A stretch of DNA of 64,000 nt. It comes from Bugula neritina (taxonomy: Eukaryota > Animalia > Bryozoa). Positions 19,860 to 62,000 of the stretch are shown here, in pieces (positions within the stretch are counted from its first letter, which is position 1; each line of letters opens with the position of its first letter). A model generated the notes under the pieces. The model did no database searches. It saw only the letters and a list, made by a program, of their open reading frames with translations, and had not been told where the DNA came from. The translations under genes were made by a program, and so were the position numbers. Location: the NCBI GenBank assembly GCA_964035545.1, contig OZ037765.1:13588698-13652697 (forward strand), in the 5' to 3' direction.

Positions 19860-22800
19860 TATTGTGATAAATAGTTTTATTGTAACTTTAAGTCTACTTG
19901 GCTTCACAATTCTATATAAATTAAAGTCTTAAATAACTTAATGCATGAAAACTTTATTGCGCTGTAAAACAATCTGATAATAAGGTGTTAGAGAAGCTCT
20001 GAATATCTGTGTGATTTAAAAAATGTATCATTGATTTCAATTAAAACCTAATTTATGTAAAGCAAATATTATATAACGTTTAGTTTTTCCACTGATGCAA
20101 TCAGGATGAAAATTAATTCACTCAAATGAGTGGCTTTTCTGGTGAAGCTCTCAAACTATTCAAGGTAAACATTGTTTTAAAACAGTTTAAATTGCCTAAA
20201 ATTTTAACAAGACTTTGAACTATTACAATGCTTGTCTGCTGTTATTAGTTTGCCTATAATTTGCCCGTTGAATTTTGCATATCTGTGATTGTCCACAGAT
20301 TGAAATAAATTGGTTAGCTTTCATTTATATCGAAAGCATGCATGGTTCACATTTAATTATAAAACGTTTGTGAATACAAAGACTGAAATTTTATTTTCTA
20401 GAAACCGATTGGTTTTTGTTATAACGTGCAAATTTTATGAACATACTTGTATAACTTTTTATTTTTATTCACCAACTTTATACATTTGATGCCTTTTTTT
20501 CAATACACATAAATAACTAACTCTACCATATCTGCACTGCTTTATTATTGCATGGCAGGATATTGTCAGTCATCTAGAATACAAAGGAACTAGAGAGCAG
20601 AAATATGCCCTTTTCTAGCAATAAAATCATATCAGCATTATATTCATCTCAATCTCATTAGTTGTGATGAAATTACTATAGTTTGGACAAGGTTTAATAT
20701 TAATATCATTTTAGTACCAGTTGTCTCATTACAGTTACTCTATAGATCCTAGCAAAGTGAGAATTAATTTAGATCACTGGAGGGACTGACCATCAACAAG
20801 TGCCAGGGTACTGAGGTGGCTCAATATATAGACTGAAGAGAATAATATTCCTAGTAAACATGATATCAGTGACAATAGTTTACTACACGAACAGTTAACA
20901 TATTCTACTACAAATTAAAGAGTCTGAGTAAAGGTACAGTGACTGTAGCATCTAGCCTTCAACATCAAAGCAATAGCTGCTACAGTAGGAGTTGCTCCTT
21001 TAACAATAAAACTGCAAAAAATGACAGACATTGTCCATGAGTTATCACAACAGTATATACAGTATCCTTGTACACTTGGGTGTTTGGAAGAGTCTTTTGA
21101 TATGGATAAGCTGGATGCTGATTGAACTGTTGGTTCCGACGCTAAGGGTTGTGAAGAGCTATGGTGGCACCCCCCCCTCGTGGCTGGCCGCAAAGCCTGG
21201 GGCATTGTACAGGCTGGCCGAGTGCAGCACGAAGAAATGCCATAACATAATTTGGCTATAATACAGCTAATTGACACTGACGCATGGGAGGGGGTAGCAC
21301 AGCATGTCCCAATGGCCATCGCACAACGTAATAAAAAATATTTTGAAAATATTTTTAAATCTGACTTTCAGACGTAGCTGAACAGTAAATCGCTGCCAAT
21401 TAAACTTGTATTATTGTTTAAAAAACACAACAACCCATTCGCAATGAAAACACTAAGCTAGGAAAAAGTTTTAACTATTATTGAAAAGTGGCAAAATATG
21501 AAAAGTTTTTGTGTGACTCAGGAAAATAATTTCCTGTACACACGACTAACATGTTTTGACTAGCAGTGAGTTATAACTAGAATACCTAAAACTTAATTAA
21601 TGGCTTGGCATTTTTAAAAATAATCGCAAGCAGCCCTTGTATTGGCAAAATATCTTATACTAAATGCCCAAATGTTTCTGTAAGAAATAGTTACAAATAA
21701 CTTAAATTTTATTTAAGAAGGTAGTCTTTGCAAATGTTTATTTAAGTTACTGTCAATGTAAGCTTCTATTACTTTGTAGAATGATTAGCCTTATAGTACC
21801 ACAAATGCTTTATATAGCATTTGTTAACAGCCATAGACACAACTGCATGCAATTGCCTTGCACTTTTCTTAGATTATCAAAGTTATCATGATAAGACTAT
21901 CAAGATACACGATAAGCTGTCCGCACAATGTATCTGGTGATGCTATGTTTTTGTCATTATATTTATCCTGTAAATCACCTTGCTGCTAATCTTCAACAGT
22001 CATTATATTCATATATCAATTGAGGGTATATAGTTGGCTAAAAAAATTGTTCATTTTACTCATCTCCAGCTACAGACTTCAGCTACTGAGCGTTGCTGTT
22101 TACTGTAGGCTAAAAATACATTCCCGTGATGCATGCATGCAGCTATGGCATCTACAAAACCTAGATAATGCCATTTGTAAAATTAGTTTTCTTTTTGATG
22201 GCCTTCTCTAGAGCAATGGTGCCATCAAACATTGCTTTTGGTTTTTGAGAAACAGGACTTTATCTGATTTTGATTAGCACAAATTTTCAGATGATAGGTT
22301 TCTCAAGTTTTCAAAAAAGGTTTTCGGCCTTATTGAGTGTGGAATGAGTAGCTTTGTTGAGCTCTCAACTGTATGTTTTATATTTTATAACGTTTTCCTT
22401 ATTATTGAAAGTCTTTAAATGGCTATTTTTTTCTATATTTTTAAGTGAGCATTATTTTTTCAAGCAATTACATGTACTGCATTATTGAGTAGGATATATT
22501 TTATTTTTTTAAATGAAATTATAATAGTGTTTACAATGTCTACCTTTATACATATTATGCCCATTATATTCTATGTTATAAGAATATATTTTATGAACCA
22601 TAGAGAGGCTGCAAGAATGACTTCTTTATTTATATTATTTGAGTAAAAGCTGTTTATGTATAGGCCCTACAGGAATAAAGTGTGTAGAATAATAAATAGC
22701 ATTTATGGCAAATATATTATGAAAATATGTAAATTATAATTGTAAAAAGAATGTTTATCTATTTGCAAGCAAGAGATGTTAATAAGTATAGGAAATGAAT

Positions 22801-29215: not shown

Positions 29216-32200
29216 CTAAGCAACAATTTGATGAATGATTAACAATTTCATTGTTTATTTTGCAAGCATAAAATCTTGCTTTTATACCAAAGAAATCTAA
29301 AAGGAATGCTGATAATAATTTTGTGTAAACATGCAAACACACAAACAGAATTGATTTTTGGTAAGTATTAGAACGTACAATTTGTTCACACCAAAATTAG
29401 TCTGTTTTCATTTTGACTATATTTAAGAAATAAGATGTCACCACTACAATATATAATTTCACTCTTCGTTTCTGAAACTTTAGTTTATACATAAATAAAT
29501 CAAATTTTCTTCACCTTCTTCACCATATATTAAGATATAAGCGGATATACAAAACTGTACCTGAATAAAGGTAAAAAGAATTATACATTTTGCTGCTGCT
29601 AATACAACACAATGCATTGGTCTGCAGATAAACCAAAGTATCTTGTGTAAATGAAATTTATGAAAAATTTTCTCAGTGGTCTAAAAATATTGCAATGGCT
29701 CATGAGGCAGGCTTATTAGACAAGCAGAGAATTGATAATCAGTTTTTAATTACATACATACTGGACAATCTCTGAAGTTTTTAGAAAATTAAAGTTAGTA
29801 AAAAGGTGGTATATTTATGTGTATACTGATTCTAAAAAATAGTATTGCGATGAATAGTTTTATTGTAACTTTAAGTCTACTTGGCTTCACAATTCTATAT
29901 AAATTGAAGTCTTAAATAACTTAATGCCTGAAAACTTTATTGCGCTGTAAAACAATCTGATAATAAGGTGTTAGAGAAGCTCTGAATATCTGTGTGATTT
30001 TAAAATGTATCATTGATTTTAATTAAAACCTAATTTATGTAAAACAGATATTATATAATATTTAGTTTTTCCACTGATGCAATCAGGATGAAAATTCATT
30101 CACTCAAATGAGTGGCTTTTCTGGTGAAGCTCTCAAACTATTCAAGGTAAACATTGTTTTAAAACAGTTTAAATTGCCTAAAATTTTAACAAGACTTTGA
30201 ACTATTAGAATGCTTGTCTGCTGTTATTAGTTTGCCTATAATTTGCCCGTTGAATTTTGCATATCTGTGATTGTCAACAGATTGAAATAAATTGGTTAGC
30301 TTTCATTTATATTGAAAGCATGCATGGTTCACATTTAGTTACAAAACGTTTGTGAATACAAAGACTGAAATTTTATTTCTAGAAACCGTTAGGTTTTTGT
30401 TATAATTTGCAAATTTTATGAACATACTTGTATATCTTTTTATTTTTATTCACCAACTTTATACATTTGATGCCTTTTTCAATACACATAAATAACTAAG
30501 TCTACCATATCTGCACTGCTTTATTATTACATGGCAGGATGTTGTCAGTCATCTAAAATACAAAGGAACTAGAGAGCAGAAATGCGCCCTTTTCTAGCAA
30601 TAGAATCATATCAGCATTATATTCATCTCAATCTCATTAGTTGTGATGAAATTACTATAGTTTGGAAAAGGTTTAGTATTAATATCATTTTAGTACCAGT
30701 TGTCTCATTACAGTTACTCTATAGATCCTAGCAAAGTGAGAATTAATGGATAAGCTAGATGTTGATTTAACCGTTGGTTCTGGTGCTATAGGGGTTGTGA
30801 GGAGCTATCGTGGCACCCCCCTCGTGGCTGGCCGCAAAGCCTGGAGCATTGTACAGACTGGCTGAGTGCAGCACTAAGAAATGCCATAACATAATTTGGC
30901 TATAATACAGCTAATTGACACTGACGCATGGGAGGGGGTAGCACAGCATGTCCCAACGGCCATCACACAATGTAATAAAAAATATTTTAAAAGAATTTTA
31001 AAATCTGACTTTCAGATGTAGCTGAACAGTAAATCACTGCCAATTAAGCTTGTTTTACTGTTTAAAAAACACAACAACCCATTCACAATGAAAACACTAA
31101 GCTAGGAAAAAGTTTTAACTATTATCGAAAAGTAGCAAAATATGAAAAGTTTTTGTGTGACTCAGGAAAATAATTTTCTGTACACACGACTAACATGTTT
31201 TGACTAGCAGTGAGTTATAACTAGCATATCTAAAACTTAATTGTTGTTCTCAATAAATATCACCCTGTCCTCGTTGATGACATTTTTTAAAATAATCGCA
31301 AGCAGCCCTTGTATTGGCAAAATATCGTAGACTGAAAGCCCAAATATTTCTGTAAGAAATAGTTACAAAAACTTAAATTTCATTTAAGAAGGTAGTCTTT
31401 GCAAATGTTTATTTAAGTTGAAGTCAGTGTAAGTTACTATTACTTTGTAGAATGATTAGCCTTATAGTACCATAAATGCTTTATATACCTAGCATAAAGT
31501 TAACAGCCATAGACCCAACTGCATGCAATTGGCTTGCACTTTTCTTAGATTATCAAAGTTATCATGATAAGACTATCAAAATATACGATAAGCTATCCGC
31601 ACAATGCATCTGGTGATGCTATGTTTTTGCCATTATATTTATCCTGTGAATCACCTTGCTGCTAATCTTCAACAGTCATTATATTCATATATCAATTGAG
31701 GGTATATAGTTGGCTAAAAAAATTGTTCATTTTACTCATCTCCAGTTACAGACTTCAGCCACTGAGCGTTGCTGTTTATTGTAGGCTAAAAATACATTCC
31801 CATGATGCATGCAGCTATGGCATCTACAAAACCTAGGTAATGCCATTTGTAAAATTAGTATTCTTTTTGGTGGCCTTCTCTAGAGCAATGGTGCCATCAA
31901 ACATTGCTTCTGGTTTCTGAGAAACAGGACTTTATCTGATTTTGATTAGCACAAATCTTCAGATGTTAGGTTTCTCAAGTTTTCAAAAAAGGTTTTCGGC
32001 CTTACTGAGTGTGAAATGAGTAGCTTTGTTGAGTTCTCAACTGTATGTTTTATATTTTATTACATTTTCCTTATTATTGAAAGTCTTTTAAATGGCTAAT
32101 TTTTTTAAATATTTTTAAGTGAGCATTATTTTTTCCAGCAAACACATGTACTGCATTACTGAGTGAGATATATTTTATTGTTTAAATGAAATTATAATTG

Positions 32201-43530: not shown

Positions 43531-44844
43531 ACTCTCTAACATACAATTGTCAAACACTACTTACAAGCTTACATGTATAGAGCCCCAGGTCATATTATTA
43601 TATATCATTATTAATTAACAAATTCTTGCAATATCAGGTAGTCACAGGTAATAGGGCTTTGAGTATTTCAAAATCGTTTGTATACTTTTTACTAAACTAA
43701 ACCATTTGCATGCAACCCATTACTTCACATTGTTATACTATTATTATAATTTACTACTCAGCAGTACGTTATAATAGCACACAGAGAAGTATTGTACTTA
43801 GAGCTTATGACTTCAAATTTTAGACCCTACTAAGTATATTAGATGATGGTTAAATGATACTGCTTCTTTATATGATACATTTGTTACCTGATAGGAGTTG
43901 TCTACCTAGATGAACATTATAGTGCTTCATGACCTGATTTACAATTAAATTGAGGTACAATCTCCATTATTGTTCAACTTATGTGTGTGTGTGTGTGTGT
44001 GCGCGCGTGTGCGTGCGTGTGCATGCGTGTGCATGCGTGTGCGTGTGTGTGTGTAGAATATTATCATGGAAAATGTTTATGTGCTAAAACTATATGTTCA
44101 TGGAACACTAAAGCTATATCCTGGTATGCACTACGTCTATAAGTTAATGTGATATAAAGAGGGGTTCTGCTTTAACAGCTGTTTTTCACCTCCAGAGTTT
44201 TTCTACAAAAAGACCTGTATAAAGAATTGCCACTATTGTAGTGATCTAACATTGTTTACTTGCTGCGATTAGGACAATAGCTAACATGGCTGATGAAATT
44301 CCTTTAGACTTTTAGTAACTATAATATGGCGAAGTGTAGTCTACAACATGTTTAGTGCAGGGTATGAACGGCAAACTATAATTGTATTGTATGTCAGCTA
44401 CAATGAAAATGAATAGCCTCATTTACTTAGTTGAATATTGAAAAACGTCGAAAGCTGTGGATTTATTTGCATTCTACAAAAATATAAATTTAATACAAAA
44501 TAATTACAACTCTAATAAAATAATTACTCATTTATATTATATTTATATTATTCTTGATACCTTTAAAGTAGTTCGAATTAATAAAAATATTTCAACACCA
44601 AAAACCTGGCTAAGTAAGCCCCAAGTCATCGAATCAAGATGGTTAATTTTTTCAATAACCAAAATAGGTTAATCTGTGTAAAAACATTCATGATACCATA
44701 GGGCTAGTTAATATGCACAATAATAGTAACCTACATTGACAGGAGCTTACTTAACCACTTGCAAACACCATCTTTTTTGCAAATATAATTTTATAATACT
44801 ACAAAAACATAGCAAGGACTTTGAATCAGTCTATGTTTCAGTTG

Positions 44845-47800
44845 TTATGCTGAATCTCGGTCAACAAGTAATAAGTCATTAAAATGACCTTCTGCAATAA
44901 GCTGAGAATACTGTTCTTGCGAGAAAAGCTCAATGTTGGCCACTTGATGAGGATAATCACATTCTATGTCTTTGAATGCTTGGCTGAGCACTACTGCCTG
45001 GTAGATAGGACCATCAAATCCTGGAATCTCTTCGCTGTCTACTACTTTGCCAACAAACATTCCAGCTGGCTTAAACTGAGCTCCAACCTTCACATAGACT
45101 AAACTTCCACAATCTCCTCCAACTAGACTCCTAATACACAGCAAATCATGAGAATAAGACATTTGGCAATTTTTATTAATTAATAAAAAAAGTGAAAAAG
45201 AAATCATGATTATTTAAATTAAAACAACTTTATTCTTTTTGGTTATTTTCTCTCTCTGGAAAAAACCGTTTAAGGACTTTTTAAAATTTAAAGTATAGGT
45301 ATACTACGTCTTACTCATGCGGTCTCAACTTACAAATTAGCTCCAGTCATGACTGGTGACACCAACACAAAGGTCATGTGGTGACCTAATTTTTGACCAT
45401 TTCTTTGATAGCGTCTGGAAACAACCCTTCCTAGTATACCCTTGACTATCAAATCCTTTCCAGCCAGCTCTTGCAGATCTCCTTCGGTAGGGATTTGTAA
45501 AAGTTCCGTTGAAAATGGGTTTTTCTGTTTCTGAATGCCATTTATCTTATTTGTAGGTATTTCTCGAAAAAAGGTTTGAAGCCTCTTATCTAAGATATTT
45601 TGCAAATACGAAACCTGCTTGTGGTTAATTTGAAGAAGTGCCAAATCATTCATGAACTTGTGAGGACAGTGTGATTCATATTGAGAACCACACTTTAGTT
45701 CTGGACATTCTGGTTGTTGTTGTGATTCACTTCTAGTAAAGACAGATGTTAGTCGAGTGTACCAGTGGCGATAACTAAGCAACACTGGATGCTGCAAATC
45801 GGCAATTTTGAGGCTCTTTTGACTTTCCGTTTTTATGTAATATTGCCTTCTTGTAGATCTACTTTCAACTTGAGCTCTTACCCTTGAAATTGATGGCAGG
45901 TTTTCATCATCACTGTCATCATCAGACACATGGTTTAGATCACTTTGCTCTTCCTCAGTTTGACTATTAGATGGCTCTGTGCTGGAGGTCGTCTTTGATG
46001 GACCAGCCAATTGACAACTGTAAGCTAAAGCATTTTCAATGTTAAGCTCAGTTCCACATTCCTGCATAGTGGCCTTCTTCATATAAAAGCTATCAGCTGC
46101 AGCTGCTTCTTTATTTTGCTTGTCAGCAAGAACCAAGTGTGCTGGAGCAATGGCATAGACTATCCTACATGGCATATTGTTGTCAGCACTTATCTTCTCT
46201 GCAATAACAAATGCTTCACAGACAGTTTGTTTTACTGAGTCAGTCCACAGCTTTTCATTCTTTAATGTTTTCTTTTTGTTGATAGTCAGAACTTTCTCCC
46301 AGCTTAGTGTTTTCATTGTGAATGGATTGTTGCTACTCTTTAAAGTTACTTCAAACCTTGTAAGCGATTCACTGTGCAGGTACTTCTGAAGGTCTGGTTG
46401 AATTTTTAAAACATTTCTTCCAAGCACTAAAATTTTTCTCCAATCAATAGCTGACTGCCCAAAGGTAGCATCACTTATGTTGTGGCTGTCAAGAAGGCTA
46501 CAACACATGAAGCAAATTGTCAAAAATTAGATAATACCTATAAACTAATAACAATGAATTGAAAATTTATTAGAGCACTAATAGGTTGAAATCAATCAAT
46601 TTGTTTTATTTTATTATGCGATGATAAAAAACCCACTTTTCAATAGTGTCCATTAGTGATTTTGGTGCAGGTTCATAAAGTGCATCTGGTGACAAGTTTT
46701 CTGTGACATGGTTTAGTATTACAGGTCCTGCAACAAGTTGTGTGAAAAACACAAAAGTAATTGTTGATATTGAAATAAATTGTGCTTTTCAATTTTAACA
46801 ATAAGTAACAAATTTAGACTACCTTAGTTGCTTGTCAGTTATTGTTAGCGTTTACTTTATTGCTCAAAGTGCTATATATTTGAAATGCCTTATGCTCTGC
46901 TAAGCTTTGATGGTCTGTCATGCTCTGAAAACTTATTTTTAATTAATTTTAATAAGCTCTCTATCTTATTATATTTTGAGCTAAAATATATTAGTTTGTT
47001 TACAGATTTTAAGTAGACTTAAATTATGCTTCCCAATAGTAGACTTGAATCTAAATTATTTTCCTTGCAAATCCGACAGTTCAAAAGATCTGAGTCTTTT
47101 TGGAAAACTTGTTTTTAAATAAATAATCTCAAGATTTAATGCTATGATAAAAGGTATAAGTAAAAACCAACCTAAACCGTATTTATGTACAGGAAAATCA
47201 CTATTATATCCTGGTAAAATACCAGCTATATATAATTGTTACAATTTTAATTGAACTTTCCAACACAGACTAATTTCAAAAGTGTGAAATCTTCAAAGTT
47301 TGCTACTGGTTTAGGTACACGTTTGTTTGTTTTTACTATTATTTTCTATATAAAAAAAGATAATATTGCCACTTTTGACTGTAAATTATATAAAGGTTTA
47401 TCGGAGGTTAAGTGATAAATATGCAGAAAAAAAGTATTGAGAAGTGATTGATGATACTGCCACTTTAGTTTTAAATTTGAAATATACTTGTCAGACAACA
47501 TATAACAATTAGTGTGCAACAAGAATATGATAGGTAAAAATGCCAATACAAAAAAAATAAGAAACTGTTAATTGGAATATTATTGATATAACTGAATAAT
47601 TAGTATATTTTACCATTATTCTCAATTAGACTTATAGGCTCTTCCTCCTTTTGAACATTTGCAGCAGTATTTCGGTTTACAGAGTCAGCTGCTCCACATG
47701 CTAAAAAAGTTTAATCCTCTAAAATTTCAGTCATCTATTCACTTTAGAAAGACTCTGCTCACCAAAATTATACAATACAAAGTGCAGCGTAGAGCATCAA

Positions 47801-47862
47801 GTGGCAAAAATCAAGCTCTGCACCTATATAACACTAGAATTAAAAAAGCTTTCAAAATTTTC

Positions 47863-47916
<54 letters not shown>

Positions 47917-48327
47917 CTTGATTAATATATATTATGCTTAACCCACACACCCATTAACAAATGCAACTTACGAAGTGGAAAATACTCATATCCTGGTGAA
48001 TCTCTCCTTGTTTTTTTTGATAATGTTGATAAATTGCTGTTTTCAGAAAGCAAATGTTTCTTTACAGCTTTTTGTGTCTGTTGGTGTTGAGTATCTCCTG
48101 CAATGATGATAAGCATCATATAATAGTGTATATTAATATGTACATACTCTGATCTGTGCTGATGAGGGGACAAATCCCGAAACAGCTGCTGTCCACAGAG
48201 TTTACACACCTTTTAAATATGCTTTAGTAGAAACATAAGTTTCTACTATTGCGAAGGTGTGGGCCATGGTACTCTGTTCTGTGCTGATGAGGGGACAAAC
48301 CCCGAAACAGCTGCTGTCCACAGATTG

Positions 48328-48407
<80 letters not shown>

Positions 48408-49902
48408 CACACACAGGCGCGTAGGGACTGGCCATGTAACATAATTAAATGTCATATGCTGAAATAAAAAAAGATAACAAAGCACATGAAGATCAAAGAA
48501 AAAAATAACCTAAAAGAAGTTTATCATTACTAAGATCTGATCCAAAATATAATGTGACTGGAGGAAAGCAATTCAATTGACGAAGTGAAAATATTTGAAA
48601 ATCAAGAAGAAATCATCAGTTACAAAGTGGGTCTATTAGACCATTTTCCAATTTCCCTGATACATGCTGAAATGGCAGCTATGATATAAGTCCCAATAAT
48701 CATTTGTTGTGCTGACTGTCATCACTCTGTTTATAGTTGTCAACCCTTCAACTCTTTAGATAATAAAATGGTCAAGTTACACTGTATACAGTAGGCAGCA
48801 TGCAATTATGATATATAGATGGAAGGATAGATGAATGGATAGATAGATCGAAAGATAGAAAATTTGATAAATATTGTTTACGTTGCTATATGCATGTCCT
48901 TAAAGTAGTAGTGTACTACTTACCTAACTTTTTTGTGCTGCTTGTTTCAAGTTCAAACGCTTGCCTCTCTATGCTGAAAAGTCTGCCAATATCATCTGTT
49001 GACATCATTTCAGCTATGCTTTTGATTATTTCTGAATGACCATTGAATGTGATGAAATGTATTGCTGTTTGACCATTTTTATTCCGAAGAGTGAGCAAAT
49101 TGATTAAGTTAGCTGTCGGTAAAGACTTGATGATAAATTGAAGAGGTTTTTGATGAACCGCCTGTGCTGCATTGTGTACAGATGTATTGCCATCTTTATT
49201 TTGTAAACTGAGTAGTTTGTACAAGTCAGCTGCTGGTACAGAGTCTAAAATGCATTTTGCTGTCTCTGTATGACTTCTTTCCGCTGAATTGTGTGCAGCT
49301 GTGTTACCATCTCTATTCTGTATACTGAGTAATTTGTACAACTCAGCCGCTGGTACACAGTCCAGAATACATTTCACTGTTTCTGCATGGCCCCACTCTG
49401 CTGCTCTGTGCAGTGCTGTATTACCATACCTATTTTGTATACTGAGTAATTTGTACAATTTAGTCTCTGGCACATGTGCTAGAATGCATTTTACTGTTTC
49501 TGTATGGCCCCATTCTGCTGCCCGGTGTACAGTAGTATTTCCATATCTATTCTGTATACCGAGCAGTTTGTACAAATCAGCCTCTGGTAATTGTTCTACA
49601 ATACATTTCACTGTCTCTGTATGAACATTTTCTGCTGCATTATGTACAACAGTATTCCCATACTTATTCTGTATACTGAATAGTCTGTACAAATCAGCGG
49701 CTGGTACAGAGCTTAGAACACACTTTACTGTTTCGATATGACCTTTATCTGTCACGTTGTGTACAACTGTATCTCCATTGTCATCTTGTAGACTTAGCAC
49801 TTCTAATTTATTTTCATTAGAGAGAGAGGTCAGTGTCTCCTTGAACTTAACCAAGTTATCCTCAGCGGCATAGTCTTTCAGCTGATGGTAAACTTCTTCC
49901 AT
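44845..49902 (-). CDS. Ankyrin-repeat / trypsin(chymotrypsin)-fold peptidase fusion, about 910-930 aa, Cys at the nucleophile position
   Basis: Exons 49902-48924 (7 x 39-aa ANK), 48097-47972, 47700-47614, possibly 47225-47172, 46727-46637, 46497-45334, 45130-44845; phases are compatible. Triad-like motifs YAIAPAHLV, NDLALLQI, GGDCGSLV, followed by PAGMFVG. Linker exons are less certain. Confidence 0.7.
47868..47910. repeat. (TA)n microsatellite
   Basis: Seen directly. Confidence 0.95.
48153..48199 (+). ncRNA. Type I hammerhead ribozyme, copy 1
   Basis: Stem I TCTGTG/CACAGA; core CTGATGA; stem II GGGG-ACAAA-TCCC; GAAA; stem III ACAG-CTG-CTGT; GUC triplet, predicted cleavage after 48193. Confidence 0.88.
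48278..48324 (+). ncRNA. Type I hammerhead ribozyme, copy 2
   Basis: Stem I TCTGTG/CACAGA; CTGATGA; stem II GGGG-ACAAA-CCCC; GAAA; stem III ACAG-CTG-CTGT; GUC triplet, predicted cleavage after 48318. Confidence 0.9.
48331..48404. repeat. (TA)n microsatellite abutting the ribozyme pair
   Basis: Seen directly. Confidence 0.95.
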
Positions 49903-51859
49903 TAACAGTTTGCTGATGTAATAAAGTCCTGACTATTCATAATTCAGAAACTATTTTAGTATTATTAGCATATCATTAACCTAGGCAGTAGAGTAGAGTT
50001 CGATCTGTGTAGGATATGAGTAGCTAAGACATTATTGGCTTCCATTATTGATTACTATTAATGAAAACTAAATACAGCAAATAATACTAGTAGTAGTTAT
50101 GCAGCAGTGCTATTGTCCTATTCATACTATTGTCCATACTATGGAATTTACAATAGTGGTGAATAAGTTGTCAGCGGCGCTAATACTACAAGTTGAAAAG
50201 CCCATTTAACAATGCTAAATGAATAACTCAAACATGCAGACTTTTTATATTTCACATTCAAAGAGTGGCAACGTTGTGTTCATGTTCAATGAACAATCAG
50301 AAAGTTCCAGTAATTGCTTTTCAAAATTTCTTTTCAATTAAGTATATCTTTATTTTTCATGTTTATGATGCAAAACAATCAAATAGAAAAAAGTTATTCC
50401 GTACCGATTTGTTGCTACAGGTTAATGAAGGGGGCAGTTTCATTTTTCACATTTTTGTCTAATAATAACTTATTTCTCTGCACATCTACAGTACACAGCC
50501 ACCTGGGTTAATAGCCATTTTAGCTATTTAACAATTGCTTTTTATCTGCAGTAAGTATTTTATACAAGTATTTAAATAGAGCTTTAGTTATACTCTCATT
50601 ATAAATATTATATTATTGACTTTTAAAGTGCTTAGGTAAACAATTAAGTGGGTCATTTCTTGCTATTAGTGAGTGGTATATTAGACTTTAGAGTGTATGA
50701 GCTTGCATCAGTGTGATTTTAGTCAAGCTATAAATGGGTGTCCCTGAAATACGCCTTTAATAAATAACCCCTGACATGTTGCATTTATGTATAAGTATTA
50801 CATTATTTACAACTTCAGGGTTGTATATGCCCATGACAAGCATGTTGGTTTTAAATAATAATTCATTAGGTATATATAATAATTGATATTTTTTAATAAT
50901 TTATAATACATTATTTTAAAATGGCCCACTAATTGTTGATGCCATTGTTGTTCAGCTCAGTATCCATGGTATTATAGAACTGATAGCAATTATTACTGAT
51001 TTTTATTGCTTGCTATTCTTTGCTGCTGCAGCACTAAGAGTAATTACTAAGCTGAAAGTTAAATGTTTAAAACACAACCTATACGTGCTGCTAAATAAGA
51101 AAATAAGTGACACTATTCTGCTATAAATATTAAGAGTTAAACTTGGCAATAAATACTATCAATTCTATAGTGCAGCAGTCATTAAGCTGAACATTATTGT
51201 CATCCACAAGTGAGCCATGTATGCACAAAAATTATTAAAAAAACCAATATGCTTGAGCATACCACTCTTAACTTGTAGTTGGTTGATAGCCAACATTTGT
51301 GTAAAAAATTTAAAACAACACAAATGTAAAGTAACATGAATTTTTTAAACTGTTTTTCAACTCACATAAAATATGAATAAATTTGTATAAATGTAGTTGA
51401 ACAATAGTGAAACTTGTATGATATAAAGGTGCCCTGTACATATATTAACAAATTATTATTTTGGAACTATAGATCACTATTGATCAAAGGGCTGCATGTA
51501 AGTTGATCAAACATTGTACTCAAGTAGCTGCTTTCCAAGGTTAAATAGTGGTGGATACTTTATTCTAAATGAGAAGAAACTTAACTTTGTTGTTTCTGTG
51601 ATGTCACACTAAACCTTTGTACTAGATTTATTTTAAAATAAAAAAATGCATAATATAAAAATATTTTTGAAAAAAAAATTGAACAGCTGCAGCATTGAAT
51701 ATAATATAATTTTATTTTTTCATTTTTTTATGTATTTACTATTCATTTATTTAATTTTTAACTGACACTTTCATCTGTGCACTTTGGGACCTTTTTCCAT
51801 TTTGTAGCTTTTCACAAAAATGTTGCTTTATTAAACATTTGTTCATTCTGACCAGATAC

Positions 51860-59052: not shown

Positions 59053-62000
59053 TTTTTTTTAGCATTGTTATATGGTAGCTTAGACGAGTATTAAACTTCT
59101 TTTAGGACATAAACCTAACACTCAGCTATGTAATCAAAATTAACTCACATGTGTTTATAGAATGAAGATTTGGTTTTGTTGTGGCCATTCCATTCCACTG
59201 GGTGAGGTAATCATCAAATGACAACTTAGTTATTCGTTTTTGTTTGCTGACTTTACTAATCTGCTCAGTGGCATCACCCGCTGGTCTAGTGGAAGCAGGT
59301 ACTACACTCTGCTTTTCACCAACTGCCTTGAACTCACCACCTCAATAATAAAATAGTCACTCAACACAGGCTAAACTGAAGAAGCTTTAAAAAAACATCA
59401 GCCGTGTTCACATAGATCATACCAGTACATGCTTGCTTATGACAACTTAGTTACTTTGGTGACACCCAACACTGATTGAGTGACCACTTGTATCTTAAAA
59501 CATGATTCATAAAAATGTCTCTCATCTTAAGTCAACAAATTAGAAGCCATATGATGCTATGCCTACAAGCAAGTGCAAAACAGAATGTGAAGCTAGTTAT
59601 ACATACACACATAACTCATGATGTACAGCAGCTATTTTAGTTTGTCTCTTTATCGGTACAGAATTCAACATAGTATACATTCTTACTATTTATCAGTCGA
59701 CTATACTCCACACATTCCCTGACTATTTTGTTGTAAGTGAAAGGGGAGGTGGCTAACATCTCTGCTGCCTCAATGTTAACTGCATTGTCTGTAACTGGAT
59801 TGTCCAGCATGTTCTGCAAGATGAAATATTTCAAAAAATTAACGATAAATAATAAATAATATATTCAACAACTGCAAATGTTTATAAGTGTATATTGTTG
59901 CCAGCTTGATTTTAAAGTTTGTATTTGTAAAGCAGTAATGGGACTCTTAAACCATCACAGAAAATATTTTGTAAGATTGATAAAATAAATGTACAAAAGC
60001 AAAGTATAAAGACCTACATATATAGAAGTGCTGTGATGAAGCTAATTATTACCAACAAAACCTATGCATATTGAAATCAAACATGAAACGTTGAGTAAAC
60101 AGTTTTCCTGAATAGGTGTAACAATTTGATACACAGTTTTATTTCAAAGTGAAGCATTAACTTCATTGCAAGACGCAAGTTGGGTCACCTCTTCCAACGA
60201 CAACAGCCTTTACTGAAGTAATGAACCATAAAGAGACAACTCCATAGTAAATGTAATTGTCACAAAATACTAGTAAAAACCTAAAATAACAAATACGTTT
60301 GTCCTGACGAAAATTTAAATGTAGATTACAGGTATCAGATTTTCAAACTGCAGTCAGTTTGATTGCAATTAAAATGCTTCTATTACTAATATTCTATAAT
60401 TCCGCTCCATTTATATCAGTTTAATAATTGCCTATAAGCAGCTTATTTAGAGAAGATAACTCTAATATAACTATGACAACATTGTGCAAAGCAACAATGA
60501 TATGGTATGCCTGTGAAATAATGCAGCTAGTAGCTTACTGAACAAAATATTTAACATATCGATACTACCTGGATTTGTAATAAAACTGTAGACATTTTAA
60601 TATTTGGTTCCCACAGACTATAATCGTCAAGGTAATCAATGCATGGTTTGCCAGTAATCATGTCTATGTTAGGATGGTAAGGGATGGTGTGAAAGCAGAC
60701 CCGGGGTGGTCGATTGTTGTAGTACTCATCAAACTTCAAGTAAACTCTAAAGACTCCTCCTGTAAAACACACAACAGCTTCTATAACCTAAACTGGAGAT
60801 AGAAACAATTAAAACAATAGCAAAAAGAAAGATAACTCCAACTTTGATTCAAAAACATAACTTTTTGGTGTATTTGGCGATTGAACAGTAAACATTTAAG
60901 AAGCTGTTTTTCTTTAGTTAAAAGTACACTAATGAAAATAAATGCATGTTATTTTAGTGTTGTTGGAAAAAATTGATGGCTATAATAAATAAACTTAAGT
61001 TTTAGTTTAGTAATTCGCTGTTTTCAAAATTAGTAGAGTTCTAGTAAAGATTTTGTATGTGTAGACAATTTCACCATTTAGCTGTCAGCTGATGCCTATG
61101 TAAAATATTGTATTTCATCCAGAAATAATGCAATACCTACTTACTTTTCAAGTTTACTTTTTATTTAGTAAAAACCATTATTCTAAAATTGTTGGAACTA
61201 AATTAATCAGTGTTTTTTTGTTCAAATTACTAAATGCTTCTCAGTGCCAACGATTTTTAAACAGATATATGTAAAACAAAATAATGATGTCTAGTACATG
61301 ACTTGACTTGGTTAGCCATTAACAATTGATTTGCCAGTTTGGCGAGACTTCAACCCAGCTCTGGTATAGCTATTGCAACATTTAAAGGGCGCTTACAGTT
61401 ACTTTGTAATGGATACGATGGTATATTATAGTAGACTACAACTTATATATTTATGTTTATGTTTATCCTGCATGTCTATTTTAGATAAACTTTATCGAGT
61501 AACTTAGTTACAAAATATATAAAAATATTGATTGAAATGGGAAAGGAAAGCTTTATAGTGGCCAATTTGAAGGCATCTGCAGTTTGTAATATAAATAAAT
61601 TCTACAATGCTTGCATTGGTATGCCACCAATCTTTGTAGCTTTCTTGCTTTATTACTACATTACATCCAAAGCTATTCTTAGCTTATAGCAGTGCTGTTA
61701 TAATAATTCAATGTCCCTAGCACAGCACAGGTCAGTGTGTTCAGATCAAGCAGCCTCAGAGGAACTTTTTGAATTTCCCTCTTTTAACTGAAGGCTCACT
61801 ACATCTGCTACTATACTATACAAACACACAATTTTATACTCCAATATTTTATACTCTGGATCTAGACCACTGGTTTGTCATTTTGGATGACAAAGGATAT
61901 CTTATCTGTGCATCAATTTTGTAAGTCTTATTTGGATTAATATGATGTCAATTTACCTACAGTTTATGTATACATTTTACAATAGCTAATGTCATCTTGT

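Follow-up and report, generated by a model that had tools for sequence, protein, structure and literature searches.

A four-exon bryozoan gene linking an ankyrin-repeat array to a putative trypsin-fold cysteine peptidase domain

A locus on the minus strand of contig OZ037765.1 of the bryozoan Bugula neritina raises the question whether a trypsin-fold peptidase with cysteine in the place of the catalytic serine can belong to an animal, and whether such a protein would be an enzyme at all. To our knowledge, the catalogued cysteine families of the PA clan (MEROPS clan PA(C): C3, C4, C24, C30, and others) are all viral, the trypsin-fold enzymes with a cysteine nucleophile having been catalogued from RNA viruses only. 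The locus lies in a stretch of 64,000 nucleotides (the window), whose positions 44845-46497 had been assigned in a preliminary description to an intron-containing, cytosolic protease of cellular origin. The results support this interpretation overall, although it missed the upstream ankyrin exons, an affinity to the plant protease NAL1, and a conserved cysteine-rich loop. The gene product is probably an active, intracellular, NAL1-like cysteine endopeptidase, encoded by an intact, ankyrin-fused gene of four exons.

The stretch under study makes up the 3' half of a bryozoan gene that is intact; its four exons have GT-AG borders and compatible phases and comprise 2517 bases (839 codons) with zero in-frame stops. 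Exon 1 (48924..49902; 326 codons plus one base) contains the start ATG, which aligns with Met1 of the B. neritina paralogue P0005 (EB796_007494), and an array of ankyrin repeats (Pfam matches to Ank_2, E = 9e-29, and Ank_4, E = 1.5e-25); a GTAAGT donor follows after 48924. Exon 2 (46637..46727), a linker of 91 bases (PVILNHVTENLSPDALYEPAPKSL...), is bordered by an AG acceptor and a GTGGGT donor, suits exons 1 and 3 in its phases, and shares 73% identity with residues 455-484 of P0005. Exon 3 (45334..46497) has an open frame after the acceptor TGTTGTAG and ends ahead of a GTAAGT donor starting at 45333. By a secondary-structure assignment borrowed from the AlphaFold2 model of the paralogue P0003 (EB796_006759; 462 amino acids; GDCGS; 60% identical), it encodes an N-terminal subdomain, barrel 1 with the candidate catalytic His, an insert, a C-x4-C-x7-C-x-H (CCCH) loop, the candidate Asp, and the first half of barrel 2. 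Exon 4 (44845..45130), whose coding part (45130-44848) follows the acceptor TGTATTAG, contributes the nucleophile elbow GDCGS, the last strands of barrel 2, a C-terminal helix, a conserved tail, and the TAA stop. The limits given previously proved to be exact, because 46497 is the first base of exon 3 after its AG acceptor and 44845-44847 is the stop codon.

The intron between exons 3 and 4 (203 bases; donor GTAAGT from 45333, acceptor AG at 45132-45131) interrupts a Leu codon in phase 2 (TT/G), at the same position as in the NCBI model of P0003. This match and the GT-AG borders bear out the intron-containing nature of the gene. Likewise, a signal peptide is lacking, as had been noted from the protease part, since the ankyrin-encoding exon that opens the gene at 49902 specifies a hydrophilic N-terminus. 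With its introns, its ankyrin repeats, and no signal peptide, the gene is in keeping with a cellular, cytosolic product. According to the structural model, the gene joins an N-terminal ankyrin array to a C-terminal, trypsin-fold peptidase domain of the PA clan at about residues 358-839, and the same order of ankyrin repeats, linker, and protease recurs in the B. neritina models P0005 and P0069.

The four motifs that had drawn attention to the locus are all present on the minus strand, in the order typical of the PA clan. In the numbering of the 839-codon model, the candidate catalytic residues are His477 (codon CAC at 46137..46139; motif YAIAPAHLV) and Asp641 (codon GAT at 45645..45647; motif NDLALLQI), and the candidate nucleophile is Cys752 (codon TGT at 45109..45111; motif GGDCGSLV), which forms the center of a GDCGS elbow (45117-45103) and is followed downstream by PAGMFVG. 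These motifs constitute the most conserved columns of a family alignment with 65 rows (A1) and are therefore not a product of chance. Counting aligned members only, the first column contains His in 40/40 sequences and the second contains Asp in 42/44; the elbow consists of G (25/25), D (23/25), the nucleophile (16 Cys and 9 Ser), and again G (25/25). The sequential order of His, Asp, and nucleophile, the G-x-[S/C]-G elbow, and their conservation throughout the family mark the domain, as far as motifs can tell, as a member of the PA clan.

The absence of Pfam matches for the two protease-domain exons might be taken to indicate that the motifs arose fortuitously in a non-coding or decayed stretch without a functional gene, particularly because decayed fragments of the family exist in the window and elsewhere in the genome and because the only public sequencing run with the stretch is not on record as RNA. 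This explanation is refuted by the presence of 839 open codons in four canonical exons, by paralogues with 60-73% identity, and by ratios of nonsynonymous to synonymous substitution rates (dN/dS) of 0.2-0.35, which leave it a negligible probability. The identities are those of exon 3 to P0001-P0003; exon 4 is 65-77% identical to the same exon of its four closest paralogues. In comparisons with the three closest paralogues, dN/dS ranged from 0.20 to 0.35 for exon 3 and from 0.27 to 0.36 for exon 4; the gene is therefore under purifying selection.

The fold of the domain was addressed with AlphaFold2, which was given alignment A1, P0003 as the target, and no templates; the resulting model of this paralogue had a mean predicted local distance difference test (pLDDT) score of 82.2 and a predicted template modelling (pTM) score of 0.77. 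The model supports the two six-stranded beta-barrels of the PA clan, and its residues 53-435 span residues 17-244 of chymotrypsin, which represent the whole two-barrel domain. The two-barrel fold proposed earlier is corroborated by an exhaustive search of the same model with VIA-align, where all 50 entries listed were PA-clan proteases. The highest score was that of rice NAL1 (Z = 14.2; 237 residues aligned); those of DegS (11.8), HtrA3 (11.7), the protease domain of FAM111A (11.2), and the 3C protease of hepatitis A virus (10.0) were lower, and among the top 50 listed, families other than NAL1 reached Z scores of 11.8 or less over at most 208 residues. Rice NAL1 was also the top match of a Foldseek search against PDB (E = 6e-7), ahead of complement factor B, factor IXa, Seneca Valley virus 3C, and thrombin. 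In the ESM Atlas, a Nal1_C cluster came first by shape, and the language-model search placed Nal1_C clusters at or near the top. In the candidate triad of P0003, His112 lies in a short helix that follows a strand, Asp266 is where a strand begins, and Cys378 occupies the turn leading into a strand; these modelled contexts are consistent with those canonical for catalytic residues.

By structure, the nearest relatives of the domain appear to be the NAL1-like intracellular serine proteases. The alignment with NAL1 (Nal1_C; PF25819), the best match in both Foldseek and VIA-align, includes a region beyond the core barrels. The triad of NAL1 (H234/D291/S385; PMC12012508) has the same order as the candidate residues of the bryozoan domain, with matching distances from the ends of the aligned range. 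NAL1 has been described as a protease that is regulated, acts inside the cell, and degrades specific nuclear proteins (PMC12012508), and the products of both genes are intracellular and lack a signal peptide. By contrast, a sequence relationship between the two is undetectable, and the bryozoan gene differs from NAL1 by its Cys nucleophile, an insert of about 85 residues, the CCCH loop, and the fusion to ankyrin repeats. The Nal1_C profile matched neither the exons in the window nor P0003, and its best E value among the 65 family members was 0.25; the lack of matches in the whole genome is weak evidence because the controls remained silent as well.

FAM111A, FAM111B, and the HtrA/DegP proteases (S1C) provide further examples of intracellular trypsin-fold domains that are linked to regulatory modules. 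FAM111A is an antiviral restriction factor (PMC9798293), and this role parallels the immune-like fusions of the bryozoan family. However, FAM111 and HtrA proteases have a Ser nucleophile instead of the Cys of the bryozoan gene, and a match to the Trypsin_2 profile (PF13365) is absent from all 65 family members at E values up to 10. A PDZ domain was not present in any of the Pfam scans. By sequence profile, the domain would thus not qualify as a member of Nal1_C, Trypsin_2, HtrA, or FAM111.

The GDCG motif is typical of viral 3C enzymes, and with its modelled trypsin fold, putative His/acid/Cys triad, and G-x-C-G elbow, the bryozoan domain also resembles 3C and 3C-like proteases (Z scores of about 10; Foldseek E values of 1e-5 to 1e-3). 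Together with the matches of the P0003 model to picorna-like polyproteins (E = 2e-5 or weaker among the viral structures in BFVD) and to the 3C proteases of Seneca Valley virus and hepatitis A virus (Z = 10.0 for the latter), these similarities speak for a cysteine protease of a picorna-like virus that was endogenised and later fused to host domains. However, the viral matches are weaker than that of NAL1 (Z = 14.2; E = 6e-7) and no better than those of ordinary cellular trypsins or HtrA, and in structure NAL1 and HtrA come closer to the domain than does any viral enzyme matched. The gene is cellular, with a host-type fusion, about 20 loci, and Ser-bearing sisters, and shows nothing of a polyprotein context; a spliceosomal intron interrupts its protease domain at a site common to the paralogues, and no viral gene adjoins it within the lists of open reading frames for positions 36000-64000. 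The His in the S1 pocket of 3C enzymes (G-x-H), which serves to recognize Gln or Glu at P1, is replaced by Phe, Leu, or Tyr in the bryozoan family. At this position, the window has AGMFVG, in agreement with the Phe already recognized in the preliminary description, and the paralogues have GM[L/F/Y]VG (M in 24/30 and G in 27/30, His in none). The hydrophobic residue suggests that the P1 residue of the substrate is not Gln. Considering also that the Ser-bearing paralogues form deep branches of the family tree, a viral ancestry of the domain is very improbable.

The alternation of Ser and Cys at the nucleophile position offers a different origin for the Cys. Among the scored loci in the genome, 15 of 20 encode Cys (TGT or TGC) and the other 5 encode Ser, always by AGC or AGT, codons that are a single base from TGY; the Cys is thus neither private to the gene in the window nor a sign of decay. 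Ser and Cys alternate in Watersipora as well, against a background of conserved His, Asp, and flanking Gly residues. Two Watersipora members, P0030 (Cys; GDCG) and P0049 (Ser; GDSG), share 62% identity overall and are almost identical over some 60 residues surrounding the nucleophile. In a maximum-likelihood tree that was inferred without an outgroup from the equivalents of exon 3, leaving out the exon with the nucleophile, at least two changes between Ser and Cys are forced by well-supported branches, and five occur on the best tree. The gene in the window belongs to a well-supported clade of seven Bugula loci, six of which encode Cys; the seventh was left unscored, its last exon being truncated at the elbow. 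Within the family, at least two switches of the nucleophile between AGY codons for Ser and TGY codons for Cys have taken place, each through a change of one base. Because sister genes flip between the two residues, the swap arose inside an animal gene family and not by capture of a viral gene.

The same columns bear on the question whether the domain is catalytically active. The structural matches include inactive homologues such as HGF, haptoglobin, and the SMIPPs of scabies mites, and the elbow has drifted beside the nucleophile, with GHCGS in one paralogue and GESG in two Watersipora members. A non-catalytic pseudoprotease that, like haptoglobin and HGF, employs the trypsin fold for binding or as a scaffold might tolerate a Cys because catalysis would be irrelevant. 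However, pseudoproteases typically lose residues of the triad, whereas the bryozoan family has retained His (40/40), Asp (42/44), and both Gly residues of the elbow (25/25), and the nucleophile column contains only Cys and Ser, each capable of acting as a nucleophile. The purifying selection on the gene likewise argues against this alternative, which is considered unlikely.

If the protein is indeed an active endopeptidase, the scissile bond would come under attack from the thiol of Cys752, which His477 would activate and Asp641 would orient; the oxyanion hole would be made up of backbone NH groups from the invariant G-x-C-G elbow. A substrate or a ligand may be recruited by the ankyrin array, and the protein would then be a regulated endopeptidase in which the fused repeats serve for substrate selection or ligand sensing. 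Catalysis, the geometry of the triad, the recruitment of substrates by the repeats, and any role in immunity are inferences.

Several points weigh against an active NAL1-like cysteine endopeptidase. Engineered trypsins with Cys in place of Ser are very poor enzymes whose activity is nearly abolished, so that activity of the Cys form cannot be assumed. The fold evidence comes from the 60%-identical paralogue P0003 and not from the spliced protein of the window itself. No protease family was detected by Pfam in either exon, in P0003, or in any of the 65 family members, searches of PDB sequences with single sequences and with profiles gave no meaningful match, and no sequence profile linked the family to any of the curated protease families. 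Moreover, the stretch is present in only one public sequencing run; this run is not listed as RNA and is possibly the source of the assembly itself.

The region between His and Asp, which had been described as an acidic and Ser-rich insert of about 170 residues, indeed comprises 163 residues and includes a stretch rich in Ser, Asp, and Glu, but only about 85 of them represent a true insert (residues 117-200 of the P0003 model), which is formed by a long helix, a disordered loop, and a second helix. The Ser/Asp/Glu-rich loop consists of 40 residues after the His helix (45885..46004, minus strand) and is probably disordered, since pLDDT falls below 55 in the corresponding part of P0003 (about residues 143-185). 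The remaining residues between His and Asp form ordinary strands of barrel 1 and the CCCH loop (45660..45707, minus strand), which is located just ahead of the candidate Asp. The residues of this loop are highly conserved (C 36/36, C 38/41, C 37/42, H 39/42) and may represent a structural metal site; the loop is missing in the Watersipora subfamily fused to leucine-rich repeats. Other features of the domain are a beta-beta-alpha-beta subdomain of about 50 residues that precedes barrel 1, and a strongly conserved tail after the C-terminal helix (Y413, A415, L418, A421, E426, D428, Y429, and H431 in the numbering of P0003).

Relatives of the gene appear to be restricted to bryozoans (Bugula and Watersipora) and a few metagenome contigs. 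A word-indexed search returned five, namely P0003 and P0005, both from B. neritina, and three JGI contigs. An exhaustive phmmer search with P0003 as the query matched 61 proteins among 1.84 billion representatives; the only named sources were B. neritina and Watersipora subatra, and the remainder were contigs from metagenomes or sequencing runs. A profile word-search with the family alignment found nothing beyond Bugula records and contigs from JGI, ENA, and Logan. The genome that contains the window (216 Mb) harbors approximately 20 loci of the family, including a copy 91% identical to P0003 on another contig. To judge from these searches, the family is a sequence orphan that has expanded in bryozoans.

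The modules fused to the protease domain differ among the members of the family. Members from Bugula carry ankyrin repeats, P0030, P0035, and P0049 of Watersipora have C-terminal leucine-rich repeats, and P0021 has an N-terminal GTPase domain resembling that of guanylate-binding proteins. These fusions suggest that the family supplies the proteolytic component of an intracellular sensor-effector (immune) repertoire specific to the lineage, but the immune role of the family is a guess from architecture alone. Features typical of such repertoires are the lineage-specific expansion, the tandem clusters on contig C8, the decayed copies, and the shuffling of repeat and GTPase modules. Together with the parallels to FAM111A and NAL1, these four features argue for a regulated intracellular cysteine endopeptidase.

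Against the background of the MEROPS classification, a family of cellular origin in which Cys occupies the nucleophile position and Ser and Cys have repeatedly been exchanged appears to be new. Only viral enzymes came up in a literature search for chymotrypsin-like cysteine proteases outside viruses, although the lack of cellular examples is no proof. It is conceivable, albeit somewhat doubtful, that the genes constitute an undescribed cellular family of the PA clan in which the Ser and the Cys forms are both active, and whose active site, tolerating either residue, has undergone repeated flips between AGY and TGY. If so, the family would represent the first non-viral cysteine branch of the trypsin fold. 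In the 'two serines' argument of Brenner in 1988, Cys is said to bridge the two codon classes of serine, with an interchange of Ser and Cys supposed for proteases; the bryozoan genes would then provide a natural, living case. Matched natural pairs of Ser and Cys forms, such as XP_067951734 (Ser) and XP_067941040 (Cys) of Watersipora, may reveal what makes an active site tolerate either nucleophile, and would render the codon path AGY-TGY-TCY testable at the bench. The family also adds an unannotated and expanded group of proteins, fused to ankyrin repeats, leucine-rich repeats, or GTPase-like domains, to the poorly described toolkit of intracellular proteolysis and immunity in bryozoans.

Incomplete and decayed copies of the family were encountered at several places. 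Two decayed fragments of exon 3 with in-frame TAG stops (NNPFTMKTLS*EKVLTI...) are located on the plus strand of the window (21354-21488 and 30998-31132), in two repeat copies of approximately 1 kb, separated by about 9.6 kb and sharing 93% identity. Because they lie inside repeat copies, the fragments are pseudogene pieces carried by a duplicated segment or repeat. About 390 kb from the window, an orphan exon 4 (L016; G000:C1:14042009-14042206) is 95% identical to that of the window over 65 residues and has kept the GDCGS motif; it is probably the product of a partial duplication, given that no exon 3 to go with it was reported in its vicinity. A broken exon 4 with in-frame stops and frame shifts (L024; G000:C3:6707495-6707712) represents a pseudogene of the family. 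On contig C8, family members are clustered at about 8.80-8.86 Mb and about 12.34-12.80 Mb; some of them (L005, L014) have internal stops, which suggests tandem birth-and-death turnover.

Two minor observations concern other parts of the window. A candidate array of tandem hammerhead ribozymes in intron 1 (48145-48324) was unsupported at curated thresholds, since a scan of positions 44000-50500 at Rfam gathering thresholds detected no family. On the minus strand at 60551-60772, an open exon resembles, as judged by eye, the core of a ubiquitin-conjugating (E2) enzyme, including the catalytic Cys.

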